Position numbers and translations under genes: made by a program. 64,000 nt of DNA from Oikopleura dioica (taxonomy: Eukaryota; Animalia; Chordata). Numbering within the stretch: position 1 is the first letter of the stretch; the number at the start of each line of letters is the position of its first letter. The DNA lies in contig OU015567.1 in NCBI GenBank assembly GCA_907165135.1, positions 2,728,001-2,792,000 on the forward strand, in the 5' to 3' direction. Below the pieces are notes generated by a model. It made no database searches and had not been told where the DNA came from. It saw only the letters and a list, made by a program, of their open reading frames with translations. Positions 5,148 to 49,956 of this stretch are shown piece by piece.

Positions 5148-8100
5148 TTAGTTGTTCTTCATGAATCCCATATCTCTCGCTCCCGCCATCTTGTGGTAGC
5201 CATATTCCTGCACGACGACTCCGGATAAAGAATTGCACATGTCGTAGTTGGCTTCGGATTTTTTCATAATTTTAAAATCCCCGCAGCCCTGAAAAGAAAA
5301 AGGTCGATTATGGCCGGAGCTGTCCAAAGAATTAAGAATTGAGAATCGAGAAACGAGGTTTTCGAGGATGTTAAAAAATGACGGCGCCGCGGTCGAGCTA
5401 AATTCGATTCTAGCTCGCCGGCCACGTATTACTAGCGCGCATTTCCGCTGATATTTAAGAATTTTCTAGCGCTAGAATTTCTCTTAAACTCACATTAATC
5501 GCGCAGCAGAATTTCTCGTCCTTGTTAAAGCTCGCTCGTCTGCAGCAGCATCGTTTGTTGGTGTTGTAAGGCATTCCATTGCAGCAGCCGATTTGGTGAA
5601 CCTAAAAATCAGTTTCTTGAAAAAGGCTTTAAAAGTAAAGCTAAAGCACGCCTTTGAGCTGGATCATCCGAGGCGAAGATTATTTTGGGTTGAAGGAGAT
5701 TTTCTTATGAAAATATTTTCCGGGTAGAAACGCGTCTGGTCGAATGAATTTGTTTGTGATTAAAATTATAAAAATAATATTTTTAAAAAGCTTTAATTTT
5801 AATAAGATCAAAATTTCAAATTTTTTTGAACTCAAATCCAATCAGAATCCCTAATTATTGCGAAGATCCAATAAGAAGTCTGCGATTACGCCTACGCTTT
5901 CGAAATTTCTTCCAGTTTACCTCTTCCTTTTCTTCTTTTTCTGGCTTCTCTTCTGGCTCCTCTGGCTCCCAATTCACCCCAACATCAAATTGCATTACTG
6001 ATTCTTCCGGCTCTTCAGCTGGCTCCTTTTTAGCAGCTTTTGGTTTTCCGGGGCACTTTTCGTCCTTGATACTTGATCGAGTGTTTGGCCCGGCGAGGGA
6101 AATGTCGTATTGCGGAGCAGTTTGAACTCCTTGTCGATAGAAAGGAATTCCGTTGTAATCTAAATTTGGATAAAAAATAAATTTTGGAAAATACTGTTTA
6201 GACATACAAACAACGCCGAGTTCAGATAGTGGAACATTCACGTAGTCCGGGAACTGATACTTGGTGTAATTAGACTTGCTTAGACGGGATTAACTGGCTG
6301 GCACGGCTCAAAAACGTTTCAAGACACGCAGCTCAGATTTAACCCTTTCCTGAATGTTTCTTCATATTGTTGGCGCTCCTAAAGTAGATTTTAGGCTTGA
6401 TATTACTACAAAACTCAAGTTCAGGAAATCAGATGGTTCGGTTTTAAATTAAACCAAGTTCTATTAGGCAAGTAAATACTAGGTTGGGTTGATCTAAATC
6501 AGATCAGATTATCGACACAATAGCACCACCTGCCAAAAAAACGTATAAGAATGGAGATCGCGGATTTTGTCCGCTAAAATAAAATGTAATCAAAAACCCC
6601 TTCAAATGCTGGTATAACTTCTCCTGGTATTATTTCTTTTTTTCGACCCTAATTAATTTTTCTACGACTTAAGGGGGAGGTCGTCGAGAAAATTTTTTTC
6701 GCCTTTTCAAAATTTTGATTATATTTTTGGATTCCCCGATAAAAATGGAGTATTTTTGGTCCCTAGCTTTTTCTCATCTTGTTAACTTTTTAATGTAAAA
6801 TTTTCGATTTTAAGTCTCGAATTTGAAGTTTCTTGAAAATTATTAGTTGGTGATTTCGTCCAAAAACTATCTAAAACTGATTATTATGCACTAGGCATTG
6901 TTTTCAAATGATTTCTGACTAATTATTTTTAAAAAATCCGAGTCTTTGTGATTTTTGTAGAAATTTCCATGAAAAAATGGGTAAAAATGACGATTTTGAC
7001 GAAAATCGAATATTTTTAATCAATAAGAAAAAAATTTTTATGAAAGTAACCCTTAATTTTTTGATCGCCGGTTAATATTTAAGGGTCTAAACTATTTATT
7101 AATTATATTTGATGAGGAAAAAAAAACTCGGTTTTTGAGATTTTTTGGTCACGAGACACCCCCACTTCAACCCTAATTTTTGAAAAATTTTTCAAAAAAT
7201 TTTTTTTTCTGCTTTTCGCCGGTTAATTTTTCAAACCCTTTTCTTTCAATCTGAAATGTCAGAATTTTCCTATCTAATCGGGTTTCTCCGCATTTTTGGT
7301 CACGGAAATCCCGATTCTCGTCGACCTCCCCCTTAATCTGTTTCGACTGAAATGATACATAACCATCCTTGAGTTCTCGATATCGAAATATCATATCTTT
7401 TCTAATAAATGCTACATAATGAGTCATTATTGATAAAGAAAAATTTCAAGGAGCTTCATCTTGTTGTCGAATTAGCTTTTCTTAGCTCAAAAAATCTCTT
7501 TCAAAACTTCCTGCTTGTTAATTCTGTTTAAATCCACAAACCACGAAGCAGGTCAACAGAAGTATTGCTCCTTTTAACCCGCCAGCGTGGAAATAAACAA
7601 CGCTCAAACTTGGTGCACATTTAGAAATAGTTTTAAGCCCACTGCGGATTAGCTACGTTTCTTTGTTACGTGTTCAATTTGCGCCAATTTTTGCTTTTGC
7701 GAAATTTGCGAAATTCCAACTATTCTTTACCTCTGCGTCTTGTGGAAAAACGACTTCAGCGGGCTCGATTTTGAGAATATAGACTTTTTGGTAGTCTGGA
7801 TGGCTCGATTTTGAAGCTTCCTGAATTTTACTGGCAAAAGGGCTTTGATTTGTTGTCGCTGATCGCCGGAACTGGTGCCGCGCCTGAATTTCATTTTCAA
7901 GGATTAGGTCATTCATATTGAATTCAATCTTTTACTGTTTTTGTTATAAGGTTTTTCTTAATTTATTTTTTAAATAAAATTTTATTTTTTTTATCAAAAT
8001 TCTTTTCATAAAATTTAATGAAAAAAACTTAATTATCAACCAATAAATAATTAGATTTTTATCTAAATTAGTTTATCTCGTTATTTATTCTCTAAAAACG

Positions 8101-14779: not shown

Positions 14780-17563
14780 TCATCCCATTTTCTCAAAAAT
14801 TTCTTCGACGAGTTCAGAATACTTGGCAGCTTGACGGATTCTGCCATCTCGTTTCGCATCATCAGCGGCCCTTTTATTATTATAATTAGGAATTTACTCT
14901 GTCGATCAGCTTTTCCATTGCCATACGAATTCAACCTAATTCAGTCCGAAAAGTTTCATTTTAACATTGTTAATTTCTCTTTCAAAAAAAAAACGTCAGA
15001 CAAAATCGAATCTTGATTCCCGGTCGTAACATAAAATTAATAGCGCGTTTAACCCTGCCCCGCCAAATGCACCTCAGGAGGTGCATTTTTCGATTTTTCA
15101 AATTTTCAATCGCTCATAATTTCTTCTGCACGATGTGATTTTTTCGAAATAATCCCTTATTCAAGAGAACTCTTCAGTATCTTTTATATACTATGAGAGT
15201 GAAAGTTCTACCTAAGTTGAAGACCCGAAAAAACGGGTTCGAAAATTGCATTTGGCGGGGCAAGGTTAATTACCTTTGATAGAAGTCGCAAGCCAGTTCG
15301 AGTCGCTCATTCGTGCCCATTCCTAATCCATGTCCTTTGAAATAAATATCCGCAATATTTGAAATGATCATGTGATATCGAATGAAGGGGGTGTTTGTTC
15401 CAGAATCGTAAAGCACAGTGTACCACTGAAGAGCCTTTCTCGGATCTCGCTCCATATGATGATAGCGCTGCGCCATTTTCCAGATGCAATTTTTGTCGCC
15501 GAAGAGGGCCGCTTCTTGAATCAATTCCCAGCCAGCAGCTGTGTCTTTCGGAATTTCGAGGTCTTCGAGCTCGTCTGTGTCTTGGCCGAGTAGTTTTGTG
15601 CCCAAGATTGTCATTGCTTTCAGATTTTTATATTCTCGCGCCGCCAGATTTAGGTGGAAAATTGCTGCCTTTTTTAAAGTTTTTATTTTTGCTCATTAAT
15701 CTTTTTGATATCTGCGCCTTAGAGAAATTTAAGTTCGTTTTCTGGCTAATTTTAAAGCTTTTCCTCAGTGACCAAATCCATGTACCAGCCACTACAGTAC
15801 AAGTCCGCAATTCCATAATGAACTAAAGCTGTCAATCAACAAGGAGTGGTTTTTCAAAACCTGAAGCTATCGGATGGGATTCGTGTTCTTTCGTCGACAC
15901 TGGCAGTTTTTCGATTCTAGAGACTCTCGACGAAGTCGGTTCATGCTTTTCAGTAATTGCGGAGGTTTCTGCTGGAACCCAGGTGTCTTCTTCTAGCGGC
16001 GGCAGGGTGCCTTTTGGTTAAATGTTAGTTCGTTCGTTCTTCACATATTTCTACAGTATGGTTTGCATATAGAATTTGACTACCAGTAGTTCTGCGGCGA
16101 ACAGTCATTTTCTGCGTCATCTCAAAAATTGTGTCTTGGATCGCCATTGTCATTTCTTCTGTGATTTCTGCCGGATGAAGTTCTATTTCTTTCAGTTTCA
16201 GCCTCTTGCACTCTATTATTGTGGTAGAAAACGAGTGAAAAAGAAGGGTAAACCTTTGTTACATCGATGAGAAAGGAAGAATAATGAGATTCCACGAAGA
16301 CCAAGGTTCGATTCTCCATAGCCTTCGCCATCGATTGTGTGGATACAGGGATCGGTGAAGATATCCTTAAATTTTGAGTTTGAAAATTCACCGTGAAACC
16401 ATAATTTTAAAATCAAATCATACAAAAGAAATTTATAATGTTGATCTTAGCTGAAAACTAATAATAACACACTGGATATTCCTGACACCACTGGAATGAT
16501 AAACCATTACCTGGACACCCTGAATATCGACGACAATATGCTTGTACTGCGACTTGACAAAAGTAAAGTGCGAAAAGGCGTGTGGCGTTGTTCGTGCCTT
16601 GCCCTCTTCACTTCCCGCGTTGACGTATCCAGCATTTGAACTTTCCAGAAGATAAGCTTATCTCTTTCATAACTCTTGCCTTACTTGTGTTTTTGATAAT
16701 CGCCCTCAATGAAAGATTCACAGTGAAAACATGGAGAAAACTCGCGCTCCTGAAATTCCACCACGCTCAGTTGCTTTAAAACTGCTGCTCAAAAATATTC
16801 AATACTTGGAATTCAAAAATAAGGTAAGTTAAAAGAATTTGAGCCCATGGCAGAAAGTCAATTTTCTTGTGCGGCTTGAGTTTGTTGTATTCTTCGGAAT
16901 AATATTTCGCCAAAGATTGGCACTGAGCATCTTGATAGTAATTCTCCGTTGGAGCAAAGTCCAGATATTCCTTCAAAACGACATTTGTGGCATGAGACCA
17001 ATCCGAGTCACGACCTATTTCAGCTTCTTTTCGTTGATTTTTCAAGTTTTTTACCTTCGAGAAATTTTGCCTTGAAAGCTCGGCGCATACAGCCCTCTGC
17101 GAACTGTTCGGATTCCATTTTGATCTGGATCCGCGTTTTTCGCCATTTTTGGGAAGAAGTATCGTAAGTGTGCTTCACTGCGTTTTCGTTCTTGAGCTTT
17201 TCGATGCCCTGAATGATTTGTGGTTGATAAAGGCTTGATCATCCGAGAGCAATTAACAGGTAGTGAGGAATTTATAGGTGAGTGACCAATTCTTCATTTT
17301 CAACCGCAAAGTTATGGTACTGTTGATATTTTTGATTCATAAAGTGTTTCGAAAGCGATATCGGGTGCAGATTTGGTTAATTTTAAATCTCGATCTAATG
17401 ATAATATTTAAAAATTCCTTTTTGCATTGGAACTTTCGATTTTATGGTGCCTTTTTGAAAAAATTTTCAACATGCCAAATATTTCTACCTTGAAAGGATC
17501 ATTCTCTTGCGACTTCGAAGCAGCAGAAAAGCCAACTGCTTTCCAAGAGTCCCTTCTTCCCAT
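14780..17563 (-). CDS. eEF2K: Eukaryotic elongation factor 2 kinase-like (alpha-kinase plus SEL1-like helical repeats)
   Basis: Exons give MGRRDSWKAVGF..ENDPFK, QIKMESEQFAEGCMRRAF, VVLKEYL, YYQDAQCQSLAKYYSEEYNKLKPHKKIDFL, FTDPCIHTIDGEGYGESNLGLRGISLFFLSHRCN, GWELIQEAALFGD..RKALQWY and ACDFYQRAADDAKRDGR..AAKYSELVEEIFEKMG*. Confidence 0.88.
15053..15265. mobile_element. piggyBac-like MITE (213 bp) in the last intron of eEF2K
   Basis: TTAA|CCCTGCCCCGCCAAATGCA ... TGCATTTGGCGGGGCAAGG|TTAA; 19-bp TIR with one mismatch; begins a few nt after the GTAATT donor. Confidence 0.85.
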
Positions 17564-17765: not shown

Positions 17766-20700
17766 TTATAGATTCATTTTGAATTCGGTTTCGCAGAAAT
17801 TGGTCAGTTGCAGTAAATTTTTGTTGAGCAAAAATGAATCTGGGCGGAATCTGAGCTTATTCTGCTGATAACTGTAGCTTCCAGTTACAGAAATTTTCTC
17901 CAAGTTAAAGTTTCGCTTCAATTTTGCCTCCAATCTTTCTGATTCGGCGCTGGCGTCACAGGTGATTTTTAATTGATCGTTTTCGACAAACAGCTTGATC
18001 TTGACGAACTCAGAATTGTCCGTTTCTCCATCATCAAAAATAAATTCTCCATTTGCGAAGCCATTTTTCAGATTCAAGACAAGATCGAGGGGCAGTTTTC
18101 GAGCTTCAGAAAGAGTCATCGCTTTCTTCTGAAGAATCATGGCGGTTTCGGGAGGATAGAAAGCGGGAATTCGATTTGGGTCTGTCGGGATTTGAAGAGT
18201 TCCAGGAGATTTGACCTTCAAAAAACAATTAATTTAGAATCATTTTTGCGACTTACAGTAAAGCAGACAGAAGTATCGTAAACGTTGCACCAATCGCCTG
18301 CCTTTGGAAAATAGCACTCGACATTTTTCATCCCTGGTCCAAGAACGGGACAGACCATGATTTGCTCACCGACCCAGAATTGAGTGTCGATTGTGGAATT
18401 CCAAATCGGTCGGATGTACATTGACTCGTTCGCAAAAGTTGAAGTAAAGTAAGGAACCAGCTGGACGCGTTTCTCCAGCGCTATTCTTATCGCGTGCTGG
18501 CCATTTTTGCTCCAAACGAATGGTTCTTGTCCAGGAGCGCCGATGGTATTGTGGTTTCGGAAGAAGCTGTAGAGAAAGACTCCCATTTGATGCCAACGGA
18601 CGCACATTTCTTCGTCCGCATCAGGTCCTTGGAAGCCGCAGACGTCGACACCTGCCATTTTGATGCCGAAAATGTTAAGATTGATCATCGCAGTGATCGA
18701 ATATTTCAAATCTTCCCATTTCGAGAAATTGTCTCCAGTCCAATGCGCTTTTTGAGGAAACAAAAAAGAAAGATTCAGAAAAAAAATAAGCTCTAGAATA
18801 GTTTCCCATTCCTGTATGTCTTCCTGACGTCAGAGCAGTACTTCTCGACAAAATAAACGGCTTCAAATCAGGATTAAGCGCCTTCAATGCATAACTGGTT
18901 GCTTTCGACTCGTCAAGCCCGTAAAGATTGTGAAGATCGTAGTGGGTGCCAGCGCTCTGATTGTAACTTGGGCAAAGAGTTTTCGCGAACAAGCTTTTGT
19001 CCACAACTGGAAGTTCAAATTTGGGCGAATTGAGAGGACTGCTTGGGCAGCCGTTGGAACTTCCAGCGACGAAGTTTGATGGTTCGTTCATGTCGATCCA
19101 TATTCCGTCGAACTCGACTCCTTGAGTGTACAAGTAAGAGAACATTTCGAGCCAGTAGTTGTTTATGCCAGGGTGAGTGAAGTCGGGGAAAACGGTTGCG
19201 CCGGGCCAGACTTCTCCAACGGCAGGTTTGCCGGTTTCGTCCTTGATGAAGATGTCTTCTTCGATTCCATTTGAGTAGGGCAGGTAGTTGTCTTTTGGGA
19301 GTTACAAATGGTACTTCGCAATGAGCGTACAAGACTAGGAAAAATGGGAAAAGTCTCTAGACATTTTTTAAAAACAGACTGCTGAACACCAGAAAGTAAA
19401 GAAAAGTTACTGTTTTATGTAATTTCTGAGTTGTATATTGCTTGAAGATAAACACAAATGAAATCAAGCTATTCGAGTTTTCCCATTTTGAGGATAACTT
19501 TAAATTATACAGAAGAAAACATGACAAATTTGACATCACAAAAAGCAAACTTATTAAACTCGACCTTGAGTAGATATCGCTGGATCAATAATTACGACAT
19601 ATTTCTGTCCTTGAGCATGTATATCTTTTATCACTTGCGGCAACGTTCCATAAGCATCAGGATCAAAAGTAAAGTCCTTCTTTCCATCCATGTAATCAAT
19701 ATCGTTCCATTGCACTTCCTGCGGCATCTTTGCTTCACGCATTTTCTGATTGACGTTCCAGGTTTCAGCGGAAGAATTGTAGCCCCAGCGACAGAGGTGG
19801 TAACCAAAAGCCCACTCGGGAGGGGAGTAGGTTGCGCCGATGATCTCTTGGATGATAGAAACGGCGTTTTCGGTCGAATTTCCGCGGATGACAAAAAGGT
19901 CGATCATTCCTCCGATTGCTCTGATCGTCATTCTGTCCTAGATAAAAACAATAAGGGAGTGATAAAGAAAAATCTTATACCTTGAAAGCCTGAAACTGCT
20001 TGCCATTAGAATTCCAGAAGATGTAGCCTGTATTTCCAATGAGAAAAACCGGCTGATCTCCATACAAATTAAGATCAACGATTGGAGGCACATCCCTTGT
20101 CCAAATCGAATGGGCCCACCCGTCACGCGGTACGACCAGGGGTCCTCTTCTTTCCCCAATTCCGTAGACAGGCGTTTCGGGATCAAGAGGGATAGAAAAC
20201 TCGATGAATTGATCAGAGAAAACCAGAGGGCCAGTGAAGTAGTCTTTTCCAAGTTTGTCGCCATCATTGACACTCGGAACAAAAGTCGAATTGGGAGTGA
20301 AAACAGGTGTTTCGGGATGGCGATGTCGGGAGTCAGAACCATCAGTGATTTGGATTCGATCGACGAAAGAGTTTTCGGAAAAGGTTTGCCGGTCGATTTG
20401 GTAGAAGAGGTTGAGCAGGGTGTCAGGCCAGGTTGGGTGCTCTATGCGAGTGAGTTTGGCAAAGCCACTGTTTTAGGTAACGAAATTTGGTCTGTATCAT
20501 GATCATGGAAGTTTTCTTTATTTTGATTCAAGAGCTCTGCAATTTTAATATACATATTTCCAAAAGAATTTTTAGCTTTATGTCGTTTAAAAACTGAATC
20601 TAGAATAAAATTTACCATTCCTATTCGGATTGATCAGCCCGTGTTGAACGACAGTATAATCTGTCCCTGTCGTGTAGGTACACCAAGGAGCTCCTTTCTC

Positions 20701-20914
20701 ATCACTAGGGACCCAACAACAGTTCGATTTCATACAGTCCCACTCATCAGTTGGCGTGTTTGGTCGGCAATCATAATGTTCTACTCCGCATTCTTTTAAA
20801 TGATTTTAAGATGAGTTTTAGATAATTATTTTCAAATAAAAATATCAAACTTTAAAAACCGTTTCCTTGGGCCAATCCAACCGCGAAAAGAAATTGCACG
20901 GCAAAGAGCGCCAT
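17766..20914 (-). CDS. GAA-like: GH31 alpha-glucosidase with P-type trefoil domain (GAA/maltase-glucoamylase-like)
   Basis: Signal MALFAVQFLFAVGLAQG; trefoil YDCRP..WDCMKSNCCWVP..PWC; TIRAIGGMIDLF; PPEWAFGYHLCRWGY; QWNDIDYMD; catalytic nucleophile motif WIDMNEPSNF; acid/base motif HWTGDN; GVDVCGF; FFRNHN. Confidence 0.93.
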
Positions 20915-21288: not shown

Positions 21289-23128
21289 TTATTTCAAGTA
21301 AAATGAAAGACATACAGTCAGCAATGTACAGAAGTGGGCAGCGGAAGAAATCCATGCAAGGACAAATCCAACGCCGGGTTGTATCGTTGTCCTAGATTTT
21401 TGATCGATCAAAAAATTTGATAATTATCAAAAATATGATGCTTACCCGCCAATAAGTAAAGAGGGCTGGGATCGAGAACGGGACCACGTGACATATGCGA
21501 GCATACAGATGAGTGAGAGAACTAAAAAACTCTTGAATTTCGAGCATTTCCATCAAACTTACGAATTCCAAGAGAAAATGCAAATGCCACAACGATTCTC
21601 CTCTTCTTCCCAAAATCGAAACATACTGTTTCGAGCGACATTCCCATCAAAGCTAAAATGCCTTTTCTTTCAGCTCTCTTTACTTTCTCCCACCTGCTGC
21701 CAGAAGAGCGCTGAAAACAAAATGCACAATCATCGTTATCCTCAGCGTCTCAACATCTTCCGGCAGTTTTTCGTCGACTCTTCCGATGTCAACATTGTCA
21801 AGATTTTGACAAATTGATCCTTCCCTTTCTGATCCTCCGAGGGGAATCCTTCTGGTGCAATGTCGGAATAAGCCGAAGTGAATTTCTTGAGCGAAAGGAA
21901 TGCTGGAAGTGTTGGTTGAAACGATGACCTGCTCGAACCAGTAATTTGAGGTGAGGCAAGTGGCTTGGAGGGCAGTTGTCAGGAGGGCGGGGTGGACCAC
22001 TTTGACCAGTGTGTAATATGGGCAATGCTAAGCGCTAATCCTTTGAGCTCTGATAAATACGAAATGAGCTCCCACGGTGCATCTCGCCGATAAAACTTGT
22101 CGATCTATCACCTTCCCTATCCCGGATAGGCTATGCGTTCATGAGCACAAAAGATGCAACATGCCCACCGAAATGTGCTAACTCATCCAGTGACACTCCT
22201 CGGCTCAACTTGTGACAAGCGTTGCGTCGAGTTGGGCCAAGGAGAAGCCTCTGCAGGAGTTTACACCTGGTGGTGGGCACATTACTCCTCCATCAGGGCG
22301 ACTTAGCGCCTTCCTCGACAGAGAGTGCACGGTCCATCAGATTTCCGGCATTTCAATAACTGAAAATCTTCGGATCTAATCAGAATGGGTATTATTAAGA
22401 AGGAAATCTATTCTGCATGCAGAACTATTCTGCAAAAAGTGAAACTATTCTGCGCTTCGCAGAACTATTCTGCATAGTGTCGAAAAAATTATCTTCATTT
22501 AGAGACTAAGTTTCAGTGTTCGAAAGCACGCTGCGGGTCTACGGCCCTTGCGCGCAAGTTCTGGTAGGGAACTCATTTCTGAAGCTGGCCAAGTTTCTCT
22601 ACTCTCGCGCCTCCTTTGACAAAAGTCGTTTTTCTTATATGAGAACTATTTTGCATGCAGAATTGCTTCGAAAGTTGCCCAAAACATGGCATCGCATTTG
22701 ACGAAAATAACGGAAATTAAAAAAATCTGGTTTCGGTGCTTTATCACTGATAAATTATCAGTGAACTTCTCCCTTCAGGATATATAATAACCCTTTTCTT
22801 TCAATAGTTATACTTATTTGTATCATTTATTTATTAGTTATCATTAGTAAATTTTATCGGCAAGATGCACCGTGGGAGCCCATCGCGTATTTATCGGATC
22901 TCAAAGGATTAGCGCTTAGCATTGCCCATATTACACACTGGTCAAAGTGGTCAGCCCCAGGAGGGCGGGAATGACGGCATAAGCCAAAACTAAAGCAGAA
23001 TCTACGGCTCCCGGTTTTTTTTAAATTGATGAGAAATTTTTATTAGAAACAAATTCATCTTATTTTAAACTCCTTCTCTTCCTACCGTTTATCTTCTTAG
23101 GCGAAATATTAATCTCAAACTGGCTCAT
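21289..23128 (-). CDS. Claudin/PMP22/EMP-family four-TM protein, exon 2 interrupted by a transposon (3' end approximate)
   Basis: Exon 1 (23128-23086) MSQFEINISPKKIN-G|GT joins in phase to exon 2 at 23001. With the insertion and one TSD removed it reads DSALVLAYAVIPALLTTALQATCLTSNYWFEQ..IHFGLFRHC..C (claudin W-GLW-C-C signature); later GVGFVLAWISS. Confidence 0.8.
21990..22957. mobile_element. 968-bp non-autonomous Mutator(MULE)-like element
   Basis: Exact 10-bp TSD CAGGAGGGCG at 21980-21989 and 22958-22967; GGG..CCC termini; about 115-bp imperfect TIRs beginning GGGTGGACCACTTTGACCAGTGTGTAATATGGGCAATGCTAAGCGCTAATCCTTTGAG. Confidence 0.88.
22405..22670. repeat. CTATTCTGCA-repeat module nested inside the MULE-like element
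   Basis: Several AACTATTCTGCA copies and TTCTGCATGCAGAA palindromes; homologous in inverted orientation to about 46718-46970. Confidence 0.65.
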
Positions 23129-23899
23129 TCTGTGCCTCTTTCTCCAACTCGGCGACTTTTCTCACGGTTCAAAAATTAGAAGAAAAAACCTTCAGAAGAG
23201 TTGATGGCCCCTGCCTAGCTCATTCATCATTTCCAGTGACAAAAAGCGCTGCTTTGGAAAACTTGGCTTGATAGAAAATATTTTCTTGAAAATAAAAAAG
23301 CTGGCCTCTTCTAAGGCTCGAAAAGAGTAGCCAGTTTAAACAGCGCTTACGATCAAGGGCCCTCAACTGATGAGCCAGCTTCTCAGGAGAGAAGCAGTCT
23401 CAATTTCCGATTCAAAAGGCTCTGGCTTGTTTTTGATAAAAATTCTTGCCACCCTACCATTTATCTTTTTCATCAGCATTTCTCTGAATTTGAGATTATC
23501 GGTCTAAAGAGACTTTGTGGCGCGTAAACTAAATTATGTCTTTCTCTGAACCGTGACTTCAGTATACTCGCCGTCATGTCTTTCCTCGTCATCGTTTTTT
23601 AGCTCTAGTCGTTCTTGATTTTCAAAATCTCCATATTCATGAGTCCCCTTTTTCTAACGGTAAAAAGTGGAGACATCCAGCAGAGCAGGAGGCGTTTAAT
23701 CTTGTTCTTTATATTTTTCTCGCGCAGTAGGGAAGCAATTGTTCGCCAAAAATCCAGCGACAAAAGAAGAACAACGATCCGATTCTGCTAGTTTTTTTCT
23801 TTGTACGGAATCAGGAACCAGAACGACCGTAAATTTCAGAGGGCAAATTTCTACTTTTTAATCGTCTTCTATTCGACCTTCTGGAATTTTCCATAAGAT

Positions 23900-24901
23900 T
23901 CTTTGCAAATCAAAATTTCCTTGAAATTGCGGTGGTTAACTTCGCAAATGTCGTGCACTTTGTCTGGCCATATAAAAAGATGGATGGTTACGTTAGATTT
24001 TTATCAGAAGATAGACATGAAACTTTTTACTTTCGCGCAAGTTGGAATAATTTCCGTCTTCAGCTTCAAATTGAAGGAAATTGAAAACAGCTGCCATGTC
24101 TGCTCAGGTACTAAATCAAAACCCCTCCCAACGTATTAAACCCTTTTTCAAGAAACAAGGGATCATACAGGCGCGATACTCAGCGGCAGCAACTGTTTCA
24201 AACCAACATCAGATTCCCTCATTCCCTGCTCTGGCTTCTGCCTGGACAAAATGAGCTTCGACTGGACGATAAATGGTCGCCAACTAATCAAAATCGACCG
24301 TTTCTGCGCCGGATCAACGGAGAAAGAACCAACCTGTAAATATTACGAGCAATCTGGCGGGCGAGCAAAAGACTGCCAAAAATACTGTAGTGGACATGCC
24401 TGTAACAATGATCTAAGCGCTGGCGAAATTGACAGCGTAGGAAAAATCGAGACTTGCTTGGTGTGTGCTAATATCAATGGAGAAGGTTATAAAGAAAAAC
24501 GGCTGGGATCATTAAACGTTTATAAATTAAGGTGATGCTAACTGCGAAGAATCAGATAATTTGGAATCAGAAGTCTGCCCGCCTTATCTCTCAGAGGGAT
24601 GCTTTTCAGGCACCGGTCGGAATAAAGTTTTTATTCAAATTTAAGAGGATAATTGATTTTGAAAATAAGTCCGAGACAAATTTGTGACCGTTTTGAAGCG
24701 TTTTCTTCTTACAGTATTGATGCTGCACCTTTGGGAAATACAACCGGAAAAGAAATCTATCGTGGATGCTCTGCTTTTGCTCTAGAATCCGGCTTTGAAT
24801 CGGTCAGTAGAGACTGGTACAATGGCCAATTTGCGAAAGCGAGGAGAGAGTTTTGCGACGAAAATGACTGTAATGACAAAATTATTGATGTAAATATGTA
24901 A
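23900..24901 (+). CDS. Cys-rich Ly6/uPAR(three-finger)-like repeat protein, boundaries approximate
   Basis: Exons give SCHVCSG..NCFKP..PCSGFCLD..RFCAG..PTC..DCQKYCSGHACN, then TCLVCA..RGCSAF..EFCDENDCN; the CxxC start and CN end are typical of LU-type domains. Confidence 0.5.
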
Positions 24902-34156: not shown

Positions 34157-34452
34157 TAATCACAGGTTTGATTGTAGAACGTTTTCGATTTTATTTCAAA
34201 TCATCATCAGTACTAATTAAAGTTATAAGGAAGAACATTTGTAAAATACCTCTGTTTATGAGAAAGCGAACTTACGCTAACTGAAATCAAAAACGCGAGA
34301 AGGCGAAAACAAGCGTTTTTGATTTCAGTTAGCGTAAGGTCGCTTTCTCATAAACAGAGGTATTTTACAAATGTTCTTCCTTATAACTTTAATTAGTACT
34401 GATGATGATTTGAAATAAAATCGAAAACGTTCTACAATCAAACTTGTGATTA
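34157..34452. mobile_element. Foldback MITE: about 140-bp near-perfect arms with a 17-bp spacer
   Basis: TAATCACAGGTTTGATTGTAGAACG..GAAATCAAAAACGC pairs with GCGTTTTTGATTTC..CGTTCTACAATCAAACTTGTGATTA. Confidence 0.8.
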
Positions 34453-37766: not shown

Positions 37767-37996
37767 CCTATCTCGAGCGCGAGCGCATCTTCATGCGCTC
37801 GTGGTCTAGAAGATTTTTTGCCAGATGCCAAATAGAGGCAATTTCTCTTGAAATGGCTTATTTTCCACGTCTCCGAGACCTAGAAAACACCAACATGCGC
37901 GTCTTAGGCAAGAATAATCCATTGTGAGTGGTTAGATTTGCGAAAAAATCTTCTAGACCACGAGCGCATGAAGATGCGCTCGCGCTCGAGATAGGG
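37767..37996. mobile_element. piggyBac-like foldback MITE
   Basis: About 50-bp TIR CCTATCTCGAGCGCGAGCGCATCTTCATGCGCTCGTGGTCTAGAAGATTTTTT; right end GATAGGG|TTAA (37997-38000); a related end TTAA|CCCTGTCTCGAG at 37228. Confidence 0.75.
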
Positions 37997-39410: not shown

Positions 39411-42400
39411 AAACTTCAAACCAAAATCACGATCCCTAAACTGACTAGTAGCTATTCTTTTTTGCGAGGAATACCTGTATCACTGCTCAAAAAGTACAAA
39501 TAAAAATAAAAAAACGAAATCGAATGACGCATTTTAGGAGAAATTGACGCAGGCTTGGGCTAAAATGAAAGTCGTAAACGCTTTTTAACGTGTTTTGGGG
39601 TCATAGTCTCGAGGACATCGTGATATGGAGAGTTCAAGTTCGGCCTCTCCTCTCAACAAAAAGGAAGTGGACCAACTTGACCTTATTTTTTTGTCTGTAA
39701 GGGCCTCAAAATCATTTTTATTGGGAAGAGATCCTGTAGCACTTAGTTTAAGTCTTGAGAAAAGATAGCTTTTCGAAAAGATTCTGAGTCAGGCTATTCA
39801 AAAAGTCAAGAAGTTTCAAATTTCCATAACCCGCATCTCCTCAAAGCGCTGCTAGTGCATAAGTACCCGAACCCTTGGAATTTCAGAAGAAAGGATCACC
39901 TGCACTTTAAAGCGTCCAATCTTGGGAACGCTTAATGCAAAGTACCTTTTAAAAGTACCCTTGTGCTGGCAAGATAAAGAGCAGACTGTGGTCGGAAACG
40001 CTTACCATTTTTCCCGTGTTCGGGAGATATGGATCAGCCCATGCAAAAGTGGCATGTTTGAGAATGCCACGCCCGGCCGCAAGCATCAGCAGGGTATTTT
40101 CCGCAAAATACGATGTTCTTTCTATTTTCGGGAACCGCTTCCGCTCAGTTACGAAAACGAAAGTTCATGCTTCTATATTTTACCGTAAATTGGATATCCA
40201 AATTTTACGTATATTCGGCTGATAAAGATGCCTCACTTTCCACGTGGCATAAATTAGAATAACACCGACTTTCATTATCGACAAAAGCCGATTATCGCAT
40301 CGCTCGCTCTTATCGTTGAGGATTGTGATAAGGATGCAAATTTCGTGCTTCGTAAATACAGGAGAGGTCTGGAACGTATAACGCGCTCTTCCGTTTACTC
40401 TCAGCGCGTCATCCTAATTTTCAAGAGCTTGATGCTAAGCACGAACGCTGCTTCTCAGAATTGTGCGCAAGTTTGTTGTTGGGTCAGACAAGTTCTGTCG
40501 TCAAAATAATTGCTTAACTAACGAGAGGGAAATGTTATAAAGCTTTTGGTAAAACTCAAAGATTCATTTTCATAACATTTGAATTTAACATCAATAAATT
40601 TAACTTAATTATTTATGCTGGATAAATTAAGCCACATAAAGAACTGAATTATTCTCTAGTTACCACGTTCTTTGCGTACAGATGTCCGCCAAAAAACAAC
40701 ATACCATAGGTAGATATATATTAAACAATATACATGATATAGAAAAGGGTGTAACCTAAATCAAAAAAAAATTATTTATTAATGGAAAAATAGAGCAAAA
40801 TTTTAAAATTGAATTCCATTTTAACTTTGATTTCATTCAAATGGTTATCATATCATAATGATCGATGAGTACGGTACTATTTGGAGGGCGCCTTATTCCG
40901 AACGCTGGAATATGGAATTTCCTAGGTGGCGCTTTCAAACCCGCGCTTGAGTAAAACCCTATCTCCATCTGCTCTCGTCAGTCAATTTCTTCGACGCGAA
41001 AAAATTGAGAACACTTCAAAATGAAGTTGCTCGCCACCGTTGTTACCCTCGCTGCTGCACGAAAAGGTGAGAATTTCAGAGACAAAACTAAGATTAACCG
41101 ATTTTCTAGACTCATGCAACAACACTCCACCAGAGGGAACCATCATCCTCGGCCATGACGAGAACTTCAACTACGCCGTCACTGCCGAAGACGTCGCCAA
41201 CTGGTCCGCTTGTGGCCCCAACGCCGACTGCACCAAAATCCGAGGCTGGAACTTCGAGTGTGCCTGTAAAGAAGGTTTCATCGATTACGCCCCAGAAGAC
41301 TACCGAAAGGGCTCGTGCTACGATTCCTGCTTCACCGCTGTCATCCCAGACAACTCATCTTGCGATGTCGATGCTGACGGCAATGCTTTCTGGACCTGCG
41401 ATGACGGTTACTACCAGTCTTCCGTAGAAATCGAAGGATCCGGTTCCGGAGACGCCGAATTCGAAGACGTTTGCTTCTTTGACTCTTGCGCTACCGATCC
41501 ATGCGCTGACAACGCCGACTGCGCTGCCGATGGTGACTCCCACGTCTGCTCCTGCTCCGCTGGATTCTTCGACTTCAACGGTGATGCTTCACTCTGTGTT
41601 CCAGACAACTGTGCTGCTGGTACTGGTGGATGTGATGCCGACGCTACCTGCTCCGTCGATCTTCCCGATGAGGACGGCAACGGTCAGAACTCCTGCACTT
41701 GCAACGCCGGCTTCTACGGCGATGGAGAGGAATGCTTCGTCGACTCTTGCGCTCTGAGCCCATGCCAAGATGACGCCACCTGCGCTAACGTTGGTGATGA
41801 CTTCACCTGTACTTGCAATGAAGGCTTCTACCTCGGATACGCTCCATATGAAGGTTCCGGTGAAGGTTCCACCTGGGACGACCCAGCAGCCTGCCACGTC
41901 GATGTCTGCGCTTCCGCCAACCCATGCGATGTCGATGCTGCTTGCACCAACAACGCTGATGGTTCCACCAGCTGCGCTTGCAACGCCGGCTTCTATGGTG
42001 ACGGATACGAGTGCTTTGTCGATTCCTGTGCCCTCAGCCCATGCCAGGCCGACTCCACTTGCGCCAACGACGGAGATGACTACACCTGTACTTGCAATGC
42101 TGGTTTCTACTACGGTACCGTGTCTGTCGAGGGCTCTTCCGGAGACTGGAGAGACGAGGACGCCTGCCATGTTGATGTCTGCGCTTCCGCCAACCCTTGC
42201 GATGCTGATGCTTCCTGCGCCAACAACGCTGATGGCTCCCAGACTTGCACTTGCAACGCCGGTTTCTACGGTGACGGAATTGAATGCTTCGTTGACTCCT
42301 GCGCCCTCAGCCCATGCCAAGCCGACTCCACTTGTGCCAACGAAGGTGATTCGTTCTCTTGCACTTGCAACGCCGGTTTCTACGAAGGCTTCACGACCGT

Positions 42401-43403
42401 TGAAGGATCTACTGGAGACTTCCGAGACGAGGTCGCTTGCCATGCCGATATCTGCGATTCTGCCTCTAACCCATGCAATGCTAACGCCTCGTGCGACAAC
42501 AACGCTGATGGTTCCCAAACTTGCACTTGCAACTTTGACTTCAAGGGTGACGGTGTCGACTGTACCGATATTGGTCTCTTGAACCAGGCCGAGATCCTTG
42601 CTAGACTTTCTGACTTCGACTCTGACGCAGCTGGTATCGACGATCCCAAGATCGCCAAAAAATTCAACAAGGCCATGGGCAAGTACCCAACCAGCCATGT
42701 CGACAACTACGTGTCTGAGTGCATGAACAAGCGAGAGGTTAATGCTCTCATCGAAGAAGCTGAAGCTGACGACATTTCCGCAGAAGAAGAACTCCTTGGA
42801 TGGGATATCTCCGATGCCTGCTCTTATGCCTAGGGTCCACGCTCAAAAAATGAAACTTTTTAAATATTGCTTTTGGGCTGTTTTCATCAATATAAAAGTT
42901 AAAGATCTCGAAGAAAAGAGTAAAATAAACAAAATTTCAACCCGATATAAAAAAGGGTTGAGGAGTTATGACGAAGAAACACCCAGAAAACCATGAAGAA
43001 CGACTCGAAAAAATTTTTAATCAACACAGGGGAAATTGAAGCCCTTTTTTAACCCTAAATCGACCATAAATTTTTTGGAGGATGAAGTTCTTCGTCAGTA
43101 ATCCCGTAAATATGGCGCAAAAAATGCGAAAATCAGCGGCGCGCAGCTCGCTGAGCGCGCGACCGCCTAAGGGCACCGCAAGGGTGGCCGCGACGAAACT
43201 TCTTCAGAAATTCATAATTTTCAAATAAGTATTAGTTAAAATAAAATAATAATAAAGAAGTCGGAAAAATATGATGAAAAAACTAAAAAAAGAATAAATT
43301 TTCAACAAAGTCATAAATTTTGAGAAAATTTAGAAATTTTTTTCTGTTTTGTAAAGACCATAATATAAAAAAATAAATGAAAAATAAGAAAAACTAATAA
43401 TAC

Positions 43404-43423
43404 GGGTGAGGGTGGGGTTGGGG
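43404..43423 (+). other. Canonical G-quadruplex motif
   Basis: GGGTGAGGGTGGGGTTGGGG: four runs of at least 3 G with 1-3 nt loops, 48 nt before the array. Confidence 0.6.
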
Positions 43424-43470
43424 ACATGGCTGGGCTAAACAAAATCAGCCGGGTAGAGTTGACGGCCTAT

Positions 43471-44965
43471 GTCAAGCCCATTTAATTTTAAAAGCCAGGG
43501 ATGGGGCTGAGACGGCCCGAAGGGCCGTCAAGCCCATTTAATTTTAAAAGCCAGGGATGGGGCTGAGACGGCCCGAAGGGCCGTCAAGCCCATTTAATTT
43601 TAAAAGCCAGGGATGGGGCTGAGACGGCCCGAAGGGCCGTCAAGCCCATTTAATTTTAAAAGCCAGGGATGGGGCTGAGACGGCCCGAAGGGCCGTCAAG
43701 CCCATTTAATTTTAAAAGCCAGGGATGGGGCTGAGACGGCCCGAAGGGCCGTCAAGCCCATTTAATTTTAAAAGCCAGGGATGGGGCTGAGACGGCCCGA
43801 AGGGCCGTCAAGCCCATTTAATTTTAAAAGCCAGGGATGGGGCTGAGACGGCCCGAAGGGCCGTCAAGCCCATTTAATTTTAAAAGCCAGGGATGGGGCT
43901 GAGACGGCCCGAAGGGCCGTCAAGCCCATTTAATTTTAAAAGCCAGGGATGGGGCTGAGACGGCCCGAAGGGCCGTCAAGCCCATTTAATTTTAAAAGCC
44001 AGGGATGGGGCTGAGACGGCCCGAAGGGCCGTCAAGCCCATTTAATTTTAAAAGCCAGGGATGGGGCTGAGACGGCCCGAAGGGCCGTCAAGCCCATTTA
44101 ATTTTAAAAGCCAGGGATGGGGCTGAGACGGCCCGAAGGGCCGTCAAGCCCATTTAATTTTAAAAGCCAGGGATGGGGCTGAGACGGCCCGAAGGGCCGT
44201 CAAGCCCATTTAATTTTAAAAGCCAGGGATGGGGCTGAGACGGCCCGAAGGGCCGTCAAGCCCATTTAATTTTAAAAGCCAGGGATGGGGCTGAGACGGC
44301 CCGAAGGGCCGTCAAGCCCATTTAATTTTAAAAGCCAGGGATGGGGCTGAGACGGCCCGAAGGGCCGTCAAGCCCATTTAATTTTAAAAGCCAGGGATGG
44401 GGCTGAGACGGCCCGAAGGGCCGTCAAGCCCATTTAATTTTAAAAGCCAGGGATGGGGCTGAGACGGCCCGAAGGGCCGTCAAGCCCATTTAATTTTAAA
44501 AGCCAGGGATGGGGCTGAGACGGCCCGAAGGGCCGTCAAGCCCATTTAATTTTAAAAGCCAGGGATGGGGCTGAGACGGCCCGAAGGGCCGTCAAGCCCA
44601 TTTAATTTTAAAAGCCAGGGATGGGGCTGAGACGGCCCGAAGGGCCGTCAAGCCCATTTAATTTTAAAAGCCAGGGATGGGGCTGAGACGGCCCGAAGGG
44701 CCGTCAAGCCCATTTAATTTTAAAAGCCAGGGATGGGGCTGAGACGGCCCGAAGGGCCGTCAAGCCCATTTAATTTTAAAAGCCAGGGATGGGGCTGAGA
44801 CGGCCCGAAGGGCCGTCAAGCCCATTTAATTTTAAAAGCCAGGGATGGGGCTGAGACGGCCCGAAGGGCCGTCAAGCCCATTTAATTTTAAAAGCCAGGG
44901 ATGGGGCTGAGACGGCCCGAAGGGCCGTCAAGCCCATTTAATTTTAAAAGCCAGGGATGGGGCTG
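43471..44965. repeat. Tandem array of a 56-bp unit, about 26.7 copies, no variant seen
   Basis: Unit GTCAAGCCCATTTAATTTTAAAAGCCAGGGATGGGGCTGAGACGGCCCGAAGGGCC; the same phase recurs at 43501 and 44341 (840 = 15 x 56). Confidence 0.97.
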
Positions 44966-46125
44966 TGACAAAAAAAAGAGGGATAAACATTTTTAGAATT
45001 TAGATTTTTAAATTTAATTTAGAAGAACCGAGTTTTTATTAAATTGTTATTAATGAAAGTTATTTTTAGTTAAATTTTATGTTTTCATTCCTTAAAAATA
45101 TTTTATTTTACATTTATTATGGCAGAAAAAGAGAAAAGCCAAATTTTATATCAAAGAAAATTTGTTTTCTTTGTGGACACCCTTGCAGCGCCTGAGGCAT
45201 CGCGCCGCGCGCTCTTTGAAAATGGCTCAGAATTTACGAAAAATTGTCGATTTCTTAAAAGTTAGGCCATCCTCCAAAAAACAGATTTCAGTTTCGAATT
45301 ATTTATACAAAATTTCATATTTTTAACATTTTAAATTTTTAAAAACGGGTGTTCTTGGGTGATTTTGCATTTTCGCCCACTTTGTGGCCTCATAATTTCT
45401 CAACCCTTTTATAGATTTTTTTTGTTCAAGTGTCAAAATGCTTGTTTTTTATAGTTGTCTTTCATATCTAATTTTTGGAATTATACGAGCATTATTTCGG
45501 GTAGCTATTTTTTGAGCGTGGACCCTACTTATGCCAAGGATCTTGCTGTAAGAACTTTAAAAGAGTTACTGTTTCTGACTAAATTTTTAGACCGCCAACA
45601 ACCGATTCCTGAAGCGATGGGCCTGCGTCGACCAGTGGAACTTTAACGCTGATGCCAAGGACCTCAAGAAAGAAAACAAGAACCTCCGAAAGAAGATGAA
45701 GAAGGTCGAAAAGAAACTCAAGCAGTTCTCGAGCAAGGTCAACGCCGCCCTCAAATGCTAATTTTCTCTTTCCTTCTGTTATCAAGAATTTGAAATCCGC
45801 AAATTTTTGATAAATTAACTTACCTCACAAGATCAACTACTCCTTTATGTTCAATAAACATATTTCAAGAATACTTTCTTGCGTTTTTATTGTGTTGTCA
45901 AAATATTGTGATTTCTAAAATAAAGAAATGTAGCTGAGATTTTGAGCAATAAATTTATTAAAAACTCACATTGTTGCGAATAGAAAAATATAGATTTCTT
46001 TTTAGGTTCTTTTAGGCAATAAAATTGAGAAATCAGTATTTTCATGCATGGACAAGAATACAGAGAGCGCCTCATTTTTCAATAAAATATTGCCTCCACA
46101 TATCGAATGACCATTCATTTTTACG

Positions 46126-46492
46126 TATAAAAGGGGGGGTCACAATTACGGGCAAATTCTTCCCGAAGCACACAATTACCACACAATATAACGGGTTCAA
46201 TATTCTTCCCTGGGCTTACTAAGTTAACGGGTTTCAGATTCGCGAAATGAATTGAGCGCCCATGGCAAACTTGCTCTTCGTTTTTTTCTAGAAGTGTAGT
46301 TTGGATTTTCTAGAAATGCCAAGAACAAAATTCAATTGGTTCGCCGATTTCAAGTTCAACTGAGTTCGCTCAATTCATTTTGAGAATCTGAAACCCGTTA
46401 ACTTAGTGAGTCTAGGGAAGAATATTGAACCCGTTATAATTGTGTGCCGCGGGAAGCATTTGCCCGTTATAATTGTGACCCCCCCTTTTATA
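46126..46492. mobile_element. MITE with about 130-bp imperfect TIRs and TA-type ends (Tc1/mariner-like)
   Basis: TATAAAAGGGGGGGTCACAATTA.. versus ..TAATTGTGACCCCCCCTTTTATA; internal inverted match AACGGGTTCAATATTCTTCCCT / AGGGAAGAATATTGAACCCGTT. Confidence 0.8.
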
Positions 46493-46505
46493 ACGTTTAG
46501 AATTA

Positions 46506-47078
46506 CCTCGGGTACCTGATTTACTGCCGCTTTTTTGGCACCAAAATTTCGAAAATCCGGCATTAAATTGGAATCGATCTTGGAATTGATTTGGTCGAGA
46601 TTTTTGGTTATTAAAAGAGTCTGTAGACAGAGTTTTTTGTTAACTGCTTTTGATTTTAAGCGATACTACTCAAAACAACATAATGGACAATCAAAAAAGG
46701 GCTATTTACAGACGAAATAATTCTGCATGCAGAATAGTGCTGCATATAAGAAAAACAACTTCTATCAAAGAAGCCGCGAGAGTAGAGTCTCTTTCTGAAA
46801 GTCCGTCATCTTCAAAAATAAGTTCCCTACAAGAAGTCGCGAGCAAGGACCGTTAATAGTTCTGCATTCGGCAGAATAGTTTTGTTGAGCGCAGAATAGG
46901 CTATTCTGAATAGCTCTTCTTTTTGCAGAATAGTTCCATTTTTTGCAGAGTAGTTCTACATGCAGAAAAGTTTCGACCACCTCTCCGAAAAAAGCGGCAT
47001 TAAATTGGAATTTGCAGGTTACCGATTTTTCAAAAAAAGCGGCATTAAATTGGGCGGCATTAAATCGGGTACCCGAGG
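46506..47078. mobile_element. MITE with TA TSD and CCTCGGGTACC TIR, containing the CTATTCTGCA module
   Basis: TA|CCTCGGGTACCTGATTTA ... TAAATCGGGTACCCGAGG|TA; subterminal GCGGCATTAAATTGG repeats. Confidence 0.75.
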
Positions 47079-47360
47079 TAAATGATTCGCAAATCCTCTT
47101 CCTCATCCTACTCTTTCTCAAAACTAGAAGAATTATTTGTAACGTTTTTTGAAAGACGAATTCAGTATGGATCGTGTTTGAAATACAAACAAGTTATGAG
47201 TATTTTGAAAAGTGGAAGCACGAGACAAACGCATTTCTTTTAGTCAGGAAATGATCCCTAGGTGGCGTTTGGCTTAGTTCGCGAGTACCATCATAATTCT
47301 AGAAAATATGCTCATTCGGTTTCTTTCAACGCGGCTGACACACAAAAAACTTTTTTACCG

Positions 47361-49956
47361 ATGAAGCTCCTGGCGACTGTCATAGCAGTTGCTGCAGCGA
47401 GAAAAAGTAAACGCCTTGATTACATCAGAGATTACTTTCACTAAGAGATAGACTTTCAACTTAAATATTTCAGACTCATGCAGCAACACGCCACCAGTAG
47501 GCACTATCATCCTCGGACATGACGAGAACTACAACTACGCTGTCACCGCCGAAGACGTCGCCAACTGGTCTGCCTGTGGTCCCAATGCCGACTGCACAAA
47601 GATCCGAGGCTGGAACTTCGAGTGTGTCTGTAAGGAAGGTTTCATCGATTACGCACCAGAAGACTACCGAAAGGGCTCATGCTTTGATTCCTGTTTCACC
47701 GCCGTAATCCCAGACCACTCCACATGCGATGTCGACGCCGACGGCAACGCTTTCTGGACCTGCGATGACGGTTACTACCAGTCCTCCGTAGAAATCGAAG
47801 GATCCGGTTCCGGAGACGCCGAATTCGAAGACGTTTGCTTCTTTGACTCTTGCGCTACTGACCCATGTGCTGATAACGCCGATTGCACCGCCGATGGTGA
47901 CTCCCACGTCTGCTCCTGCTCCGCTGGATTCTTCGACTTCAACGGTGATGCTTCTCTTTGCGTCCCAGACAACTGTGCCGCTGGTACTGGTGGTTGTGAT
48001 GCCGACGCTACCTGCTCCGTCGATCTTCCCGATGAGGACGGTAACGGTCAGAACTCCTGCACTTGCAATGCCGGCTTCTATGGCGATGGAGAGGAATGCT
48101 TCGTCGACTCTTGCGCTCTGAGCCCATGCCAAGATGACGCCACCTGCGCTAACGTCGGTGACGACTTCACCTGTACTTGCAACGAAGGCTTCTACCTCGG
48201 ATACGCTCCATATGAAGGTTCAGGTGAAGGTTCCACCTGGGACGACCCAGCGGCCTGCCACGTCGATGTCTGCGATTCTGCCAACCCATGTGATGCTGAC
48301 GCCGCTTGCACCAACAACGCTGATGGTTCTACCAGCTGCGCTTGCAACGCCGGCTTCTACGGTGACGGATACGAATGCTTCGTCGACTCCTGTGCCCTTA
48401 GCCCGTGCCAGGATAATTCTGCTTGCGAAAACATCGGTGATGATTACACCTGCACATGCAACTTCGGATATTACCTCGGTTTTGCACCCTACGAGGGATC
48501 TGGAGAGGGCTCAACCTGGGAAAATCCTGATGCATGCCATGTTGATGTCTGTGCCTCCGCAAATCCATGCGATGTCGATGCTGCTTGCTTCAACAATCCG
48601 GACGGCTCTCAATCCTGCGCCTGCAACGACGGTTTCTACGGTGATGGATACGAGTGTTTTGTTGATTCATGCGCCCTCAGCCCTTGCCAAGATGACGCAA
48701 CGTGCGCCAACGTTGGTGATGAGTATACGTGTACATGCAATGACGGCTTCTACCTCGGTTACGCTCCATATGAAGGATCCGGCGAAGGTTCTACCTGGGA
48801 CGATCCAGCTGCTTGTCACATCGACGTCTGTGCCTCCGCGAACCCATGTGACGCTGATGCTGCTTGCTCCAATAATGACGATGGTTCACAAAGCTGTTCT
48901 TGTAACGATGGATTCTACGGGGATGGCTATGAGTGCTTCGTCGATTCTTGCGCTCTAAGCCCATGCCAGGCTGACTCAACCTGTGCCAATACTGGTGATA
49001 GCTACACGTGCACATGTAACGAAGGTTTCTACCTCGGTGAAGATAGCGAAGGTGATGATGCCTGTCATGTTGATGTTTGCGACTCTGCTAACCCATGCGA
49101 TGTCGACGCCACTTGCTCGAACGAGATTGACGGATCCCAAAGCTGTGTTTGCAACGATGGATTCTACGGCGACGGTGATGAATGTTTCTTCGACTCTTGC
49201 GCAACCAGCCCTTGCCAAGTCGATTCAACTTGCACCAACGAAGGCGACTCGTTTTCATGCACCTGTAATGCTGGTTTCTACGAAGGCACCACAACTGTTG
49301 AGGGGTCAACTGGCGATCTAAGAGACGAAGTTGCTTGCCACGTCGATGTCTGCGCTTCTGAAAGCAATCCATGCGATTCCAACGCTTCTTGCGACAATAA
49401 TGCCGATGGCTCCCAGACTTGCACTTGCAACTTTGACTTCAAGGGCGACGGAGTCACCTGTACTGACATTGGTCTTCTTAATCAAGCTGAAATTCAAGAT
49501 CGACTTGCCGCTTTTGACTCGGATGCCGCTGGTATCGACAATTCCAAGGTTGCCAAGAAGTTCAACAAGGCCCTTAAGAAGTACCCAATGAAACATGTCG
49601 ACAACTACGTATCTGAGTGCATGAACAAGCGCGAAGCCAATGCTATCATTGAAGCTGCTGAAGCTGATGATATTTCTGGACAAGAAGAAGAGCTTCTCGG
49701 CTGGGACATCAGCGATGCCTGCTCTTATGCCAAGGATCTTGCTGTAAGATACTCTTAGATTTTCAGGTTTAAGCATATTTTCTAGACCGCCAACAACCGA
49801 TTCCTGAAGCGATGGGCCTGCGTCGAACAGTGGGGCTTTAACGTTGGTGCCAAGGACCTCAAAAAGGAAAACAAAAACCTCCGAAAGAAAATGAAAAAGT
49901 CAGAAAAACAGCTCAAGCAGTTCACAAGCAAAGTCAACGCTGCCCTTGGCTGCTAG
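47361..49956 (+). CDS. Secreted EGF-repeat protein copy 2 (14 EGF-like domains, acidic, basic coiled-coil tail), intact
   Basis: MKLLATVIAVAAARK|GT, long exon about 47473-49743 in one frame (shadow ORFs all share one frame), last exon DRQQRFLKRWACVEQW..KDLKKENKNLRKKMKK..AALGC* (TAG 49954-49956). Confidence 0.88.

Follow-up and report, generated by a model that had tools for sequence, protein, structure and literature searches.

A young inverted-repeat transposon in a claudin-like coding exon of Oikopleura dioica: probably a disrupted allele, with a splice-site fit at chance level

Introduction

Codon-adding introners with their own splice sites are already known from Aureococcus (PMC9860276). 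In the introners of Aureococcus sp., both splice sites are part of the element, and 12 nt are added, of which 4 nt come from the element and 8 nt from the target-site duplication (TSD) (Gozashti et al. 2022, PMC9860276 Fig. 2F-G). Among larvaceans, MITE-derived introns have been described in Fritillaria borealis (Henriet et al. 2019, as reviewed in PMC11282704), and intron gains by transposon insertion are listed for Oikopleura (PMC3443670).

Here we analyzed an inverted-repeat element in OKI2018_I69, the genome assembly of Okinawan Oikopleura dioica. An earlier note on this DNA, based on the nucleotide sequence alone, had proposed that the element is spliced out through sites in its own terminal inverted repeats (TIRs), and that its family acts as an introner. 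One of the features by which introners are recognized, a TIR/TSD element in a coding exon whose orthologs are empty, was found at this locus. We nevertheless do not class the element as an introner, because the public gene models do not annotate it as an intron and its splicing and its family are putative.

Results

The host gene and the site of insertion

The window matches chromosome 2 of OKI2018_I69 (OU015567.1) letter for letter, and the element lies on the short arm, at about OU015567.1:2,749,989-2,750,958. The short arm of this autosome is repeat-rich, and the assembly was built from 221x Nanopore reads of a single male with a heterozygosity of about 3.6%, the haplotypes being merged (PMC8008620). 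All positions below refer to the window, which is the whole 64-kb stretch of DNA that was analyzed.

The host is a claudin-like gene of five exons on the minus strand, and the insertion point is in exon 2, in the first membrane helix. Its parts are as follows:

23086-23128, minus strand: exon 1, with the ATG at 23128, MSQFEINISPKKIN, and a phase-1 junction; the exon/intron position is matched in the Bergen ortholog and in the ENA contig
22990-23085, minus strand: host intron 1, 96 nt, GTAGGA...TTTAG
22958-22989, minus strand: 5' piece of exon 2, in which the first membrane helix begins; its last nucleotides are the left target-site copy
21694-21979, minus strand: 3' piece of exon 2, with the end of TM1, the W...GLF...C...C loop, and TM2
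21563-21652, minus strand: host exon 3
21446-21521, minus strand: host exon 4
21289-21391, minus strand: host exon 5 through the stop codon

Removal of 978 nt restored an ORF of 209 aa, which aligned without gaps to the Bergen ortholog CBY23449.1 (170 of 209 residues identical). UniRef names the Bergen ortholog Claudin. Its match to the Pfam Claudin_2 domain was weak, at 28.6 bits against a curated cut-off of 29.1 (E 1.5e-6), and the W...GLF...C...C motif is visible in the host protein. The gene is free of other lesions, and every splice site is intact.

Structure and class of the element

The following features were assigned to the element and its flanks:

21990-22957: non-autonomous TIR DNA transposon, 968 bp (or 970 bp, 21989-22958)
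22849-22958: TIR, arm on the 5' side of the gene, 110 nt
21989-22098: TIR, arm on the 3' side of the gene, 110 nt, in which three competing acceptors of the YAG type end at 22050, 22035, and 22028
22958-22967, minus strand: left target-site copy in the 10-bp reading (22959-22966 in the 8-bp reading)
21980-21989, minus strand: right target-site copy in the 10-bp reading (21981-21988 in the 8-bp reading)
22405-22670: internal module of about 270 nt with short GCAGAATAG repeats

The two TIR arms are 92% complementary, with 9 mismatches in 110 nt, two of which are at positions 5-6. An exact direct repeat of 12 nt flanks the element, its copies lying 978 nt apart. The earlier note had described a 968-bp element with an exact 10-bp TSD in exon 2. 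The insertion and the flanking repeat were confirmed, but the boundaries can be read in two ways that fit equally well: 968 bp with a 10-bp TSD and GGG...CCC ends, or 970 bp with an 8-bp TSD and GGGG...CCCC ends. TSDs of 9 bp or 12 bp were rejected, as the TIRs are then out of register or the repeat fails.

Mutator/MULE elements have TSDs of 9-11 bp and long TIRs beginning with G. The element had been called MULE-like, and its long, G-starting arms agree with this name, but the name is unproven because the TSD reads as 8 or 10 bp, and the 8-bp reading suits Merlin equally. hAT elements have 8-bp TSDs and short TIRs starting with CAG or TAG; this class was rejected for the present element, whose ends start with GGG and whose TIRs are 110 nt long, in contrast to a hAT-like element of 2.7 kb at 42831-45527, whose ends are TAGGG and whose 8-bp TSD is exact. 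The Merlin superfamily has 5'-GG ends, TIRs of 24-462 bp, and TSDs of 8-9 bp (PMC8101967).

The six interior ORFs (all <62 aa) gave no Pfam match that would indicate transposase remnants, and an Rfam search of the element gave no match. Further copies of the TIR family were found neither in the 64-kb window, the viral contigs, and the ortholog loci L001-L004, nor in two metagenome scans with TIR patterns of 29 and 21 nt.

At least 10 other inverted-repeat elements are present within the window. Two TTAA-flanked TIR elements are located at 6673-7332 and 15053-15265; one has CCC ends and is piggyBac-like, and the other has GGGGG ends and is presumably Kolobok-like. Near-perfect foldback or palindromic MITEs with arms of at most 313 nt are located at 34157-34452, 55399-56144, 46126-46492, and 37767-37995. 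The MITE at 46126-46492 sits 10 nt from a TIR element at 46503-47081. Inside this TIR element, which is unrelated to the one in the claudin-like gene, positions 46713-46973 are about 70% like the module at 22405-22670. The common module of about 270 nt has imperfect inverted ends and may be a nested mini-element or, alternatively, the result of a sequence exchange between families. Two similar EGF-repeat genes (41040-42833 and 47477-49776) are arranged in tandem, with transposons between them.

Empty sites in related lineages

The insertion site was empty in an ENA metagenome contig from the nearer lineage (L001), in the Bergen reference and allelic scaffolds (L002 and L004), and in a JGI contig (L003). 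These empty-site orthologs represent two other lineages. L001 is not a conspecific allele, because its CDS is 87% identical to that of the window and 17 of the 48 four-fold sites differ; between the two, 48 codons differ by silent and 11 by replacement changes. The empty site in L001 therefore dates the insertion after the split from the lineage of L001. The perfect TSD and the host gene without any other lesion argue that the insertion is recent, and it is probably very young. The insertion allele is probably heterozygous in the reference male.

Polarization of the changes on Bergen assigned 6 replacement and 10 silent changes to the window branch and 1 and 12, respectively, to the ENA branch, a difference that is not significant (Fisher p = 0.09) and rests on an outgroup near saturation. 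Three of the six window-branch replacements, at codons 19, 20, and 33 (22975-22974 and the region of 21959), lie in TM1 around the insertion. The helix-to-tryptophan spacing was constant across all orthologs examined. The public protein collection contained no full-length Okinawan product of the host gene. It also contained no protein starting at the TIR-borne GTG, which would have marked another carrier.

Gene order differs just past the claudin-like gene: a GH31 alpha-glucosidase follows in the window (17766-20914), and the next called gene in Bergen is an OATP transporter (L002:18923-20863). The QVR-like neighbor upstream of the claudin-like gene is retained in Bergen. A stretch upstream of the claudin ATG (23115-23800) is conserved with Bergen at 68% and has no gene in the public annotation. 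Identity to the ENA contig was 91% over 23073-23328, compared to 87% for the claudin CDS. The stretch 23115-23800 is possibly an unannotated gene, or 5' sequence common to the head-to-head QVR-like gene at 24017-24901.

Arithmetic of the proposed intron

The positions that bear on splicing and on transcript ends are as follows (a slash marks the splice position):

22931-22933, minus strand: premature in-frame stop codon TAA of the unspliced transcript
22937-22938, minus strand: proposed donor GT, CCA/GTGTGT
22000-22001, minus strand: proposed acceptor AG, GGTCAAAG/, with A at -3 and no T tract
21964-21965, minus strand: exonic AAG, in frame at +3 nt with donor 22938 and at -15 nt with the GG donor 22956
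22830-22835, minus strand: AATAAA hexamer in gene sense just inside the 5' arm, a possible premature polyadenylation signal

Without splicing, the frame runs ..IPALL-GLTTLTSV-stop, as had been claimed, and ends at TAA 22933-22931, 8 codons into the element and after 33 aa in total. The proposed splice from 22938 to 22000 also proved to be frame-neutral. It would remove an intron of 939 nt, keep 39 nt that are identical under the 8-bp and 10-bp TSD readings, and give ..IPALL-GLTTLTMVHPALL-TTALQ.., open to the natural stop. The 13 added residues are hydrophobic, the best 19-residue hydropathy rising from 1.64 to 2.0. The earlier note was likewise right that the splice arithmetic holds in either orientation and that two of the three phases of the retained TIR piece are free of stops. 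In simulation, 66% of insertions into the host CDS would be rescued by a splice of the 22938/22000 type. The two-orientation symmetry arises because TIRs place any GT and CT of one arm as donor and acceptor both ways.

We compared this fit with null sequences at the insertion site. A GT-AG pair that holds the frame, brings in no stop, and retains 39 nt or less was present in 26.5% of TIRs after dinucleotide shuffling, in 28.5% of random sequences, and in 21.8% of 110-mers sampled from the window. When the limit was raised to at most 69 nt, 41-51% of these null sequences gave an in-frame, stop-free GT-AG pair. A GT-AG pair that is stop-free in at least two phases was given by about 23-25% of random 40-mers. 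The frame-neutral GT-AG fit of the element is thus no better than chance. Because about one quarter of random TIRs pass, GT-AG arithmetic alone should not promote insertions to introner candidates.

Quality of the splice sites and the public gene model

The donor at 22938 (CCA/GTGTGT) has 5 of 9 matches to the U1 consensus, which is at the low end of the host donors (5-7) but inside their range. GTAATA at 22934 was rejected as a clearly better donor, with 4 of 9 matches. The acceptor at 22000 is an AAG. All 13 host acceptors examined were TAG or CAG, in a small, partly orthologous sample of six intron positions (four claudin introns in up to three lineages, their intron sequence being unalignable, and two introns in the neighboring gene). 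Window-wide, by contrast, only 37% of AG dinucleotides have a preceding pyrimidine. The YAG sites ending at 22050, 22035, and 22028 are located 28-50 nt upstream of acceptor 22000. Splicing from GT donors to these YAG sites shifts the frame or keeps the stop, except for 22936-22028 (+23 aa). In both the MFE and the centroid fold, donor 22938 and acceptor 22000 are paired in a predicted TIR duplex of about 105 bp. Such a duplex would be expected to hinder the 3' splice site in particular.

Approximately 10-11% of splice-site pairs in O. dioica are non-canonical, with GA-AG foremost (PMC7072748, PMC8008620). When the non-canonical donors of this species were allowed, 28 in-frame pairs were found around the element, 22938-21964 among them; besides 22938-22000, there are at least five in-frame pairs.

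The public gene models are AUGUSTUS predictions guided by intron hints, which came from RNA-seq of the same laboratory culture (PMC8008620). The model at the locus has 102 aa, running from an ATG at 21733 to 21289. It comprises the last 102 residues and leaves out the element, which is not annotated as an intron. A canonical intron at the element would add about 110 codons to this model. The public model counts weakly against the 22938-22000 junction; the evidence is weak because the culture RNA may come mostly from empty alleles. The 5' truncation of the public claudin model to 102 aa (21289-21733) results from the insertion; the actual gene encodes 209 aa.

Discussion

We favor a young disruptive insertion that has produced a null or near-null allele, probably heterozygous, and give this reading a probability of about 0.64. 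The insertion into exon 2, which the sequence shows, was recent and left a duplication of 8 or 10 bp in a claudin-like gene that is otherwise intact; its source would be a non-autonomous, cut-and-paste, MITE-like transposon of the Mutator or Merlin type that was mobilized in trans. Most transcripts of the insertion allele would stop at TAA 22933, yielding a 33-aa peptide, with decay or premature polyadenylation, or they may be mis-spliced to the YAG at 22050, 22035, or 22028, mostly with a frameshift or with the stop kept. Transcripts of these kinds would leave the allele null or near-null, and it would probably be heterozygous in a single, highly heterozygous male whose haplotypes were merged. 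The GT and AG inside the TIRs would be chance dinucleotides. Several points weigh against a null allele. Donor 22938 is mediocre yet inside the host range (5/9), AAG acceptors do occur in most eukaryotes, if rarely, and the donor may be recognized before the 3' arm is transcribed. O. dioica also tolerates about 11% non-canonical introns (PMC8008620). The silence of AUGUSTUS may also reflect shallow RNA or mostly empty alleles.

In-frame removal of the element by another pair of sites, with a GT, a GG, or the exon-1 donor, is unlikely, although several combinations would work on paper. Donor 22938 with the AAG in the exon at 21964 would bring the smallest change (+1 aa). For the GG at 22956, a non-canonical donor, joining to acceptor 21964 would cost 5 aa and joining to 22000 would add 7 aa. 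The other pairs are donor 22936 with the TAG at 22028 (+23 aa), the GG at 22957 with 22028 (+16 aa), and the exon-1 donor directly with 22000. All of these pairs are in frame and stop-free, and some preserve the helix length better than the +13 product; the share of non-canonical pairs in O. dioica (~10-11%; PMC7072748, PMC8008620) also speaks for them. However, each relies on an AAG acceptor or on a donor that lacks the AG/ context described for the GA donors of O. dioica, and none of them appears in the public gene model.

Use by the spliceosome of the TIR-borne GT at 22938 and AG at 22000 is, in our estimate, slightly less probable still. It would create a new intron of 939 nt and a protein of 222 aa with 13 more residues in the first helix region, the allele being functional or partly so. 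The pair is canonical, in frame, and stop-free, the inserted residues are hydrophobic (1.64 to 2.0), and there is precedent both in the Aureococcus introners, which carry both sites and add 12 nt (PMC9860276), and in the transposon-derived introns reported for Oikopleura and Fritillaria (PMC3443670, PMC11282704). However, about 25% of random TIRs fit as well, the AAG acceptor lies past three YAGs, both sites are buried in the predicted TIR duplex, the intron is absent from the public gene model, and the helix-to-tryptophan spacing is constant in the orthologs examined. The claim that the element is spliced at its TIR sites, and that its family is an introner, was therefore not supported, given the chance-level fit, the AAG acceptor, the many in-frame pairs, and a public model without the intron.

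An older insertion, common or fixed in the Okinawan lineage, in a gene that is decaying as a pseudogene entirely or in its 5' half, seems distinctly improbable. It would agree with the 6 replacement to 10 silent changes on the window branch against 1 to 12 on the ENA branch, with the three of six replacements in TM1, and with a protein collection without the Okinawan full-length product. However, the two branches do not differ significantly (Fisher p = 0.09), with an outgroup close to saturation; there is no second lesion, the splice sites are intact, the TSD is perfect, and silent codon differences outnumber replacements overall (48 versus 11).

An active G-ended, long-TIR family with a donor and an acceptor in each arm, of which about two-thirds of exonic insertions would be spliced in frame in either orientation with a 13-codon scar, is more doubtful again and would be a surprising outcome. 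An assembly artefact that put a repeat into the exon is the least credible explanation, since clean TIRs and an exact target duplication are the mark of transposition and the assembly was built from 221x Nanopore reads (PMC8008620).

On present evidence, the disrupted allele that we favor is another case of a transposon recently inserted into an exon, in a reference animal of very high heterozygosity. If the element were spliced, it would represent a dated, still-segregating intron birth in a chordate whose introns are known to turn over fast, and would give the animals an example of an introner that adds codons. If a family with 13-codon scars did exist, an orientation-independent, codon-adding introner would have been caught segregating, and intron birth and peptide insertion would be testable by genotype.

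Comparison with known systems

The element resembles non-autonomous Mutator-like elements (MULE-MITEs) in its 110-nt TIRs starting with GGG(G), its 10-bp TSD in one reading, and its lack of coding capacity. It differs in that its TSD may be 8 bp and that no transposase partner could be assigned to it. With non-autonomous Merlin elements it shares the GG ends, a TIR length within their range, and the 8-bp TSD of the 970-bp reading, whereas no DDE_Tnp_IS1595 transposase was seen in the element.

Like the window element, the MITE-derived introns of Fritillaria belong to a larvacean and have TIRs and a TSD, and they occupy coding-exon positions specific to their lineage. They are reported to be fixed, backed by transcripts, for the most part non-canonical, and removed at the element ends or close to them, whereas the window element would need internal sites.

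The introners of Aureococcus are also DNA transposons with TIRs and a TSD in a coding exon, with both dinucleotides internal and with retained ends plus TSD that make a multiple of three. They form multi-copy families of annotated introns, whereas the window element is a single copy among the sequences searched and is unannotated as an intron. If spliced, it would keep 39 nt rather than 12, and its acceptor would be an AAG that lies 10-11 nt deep in a long duplex.
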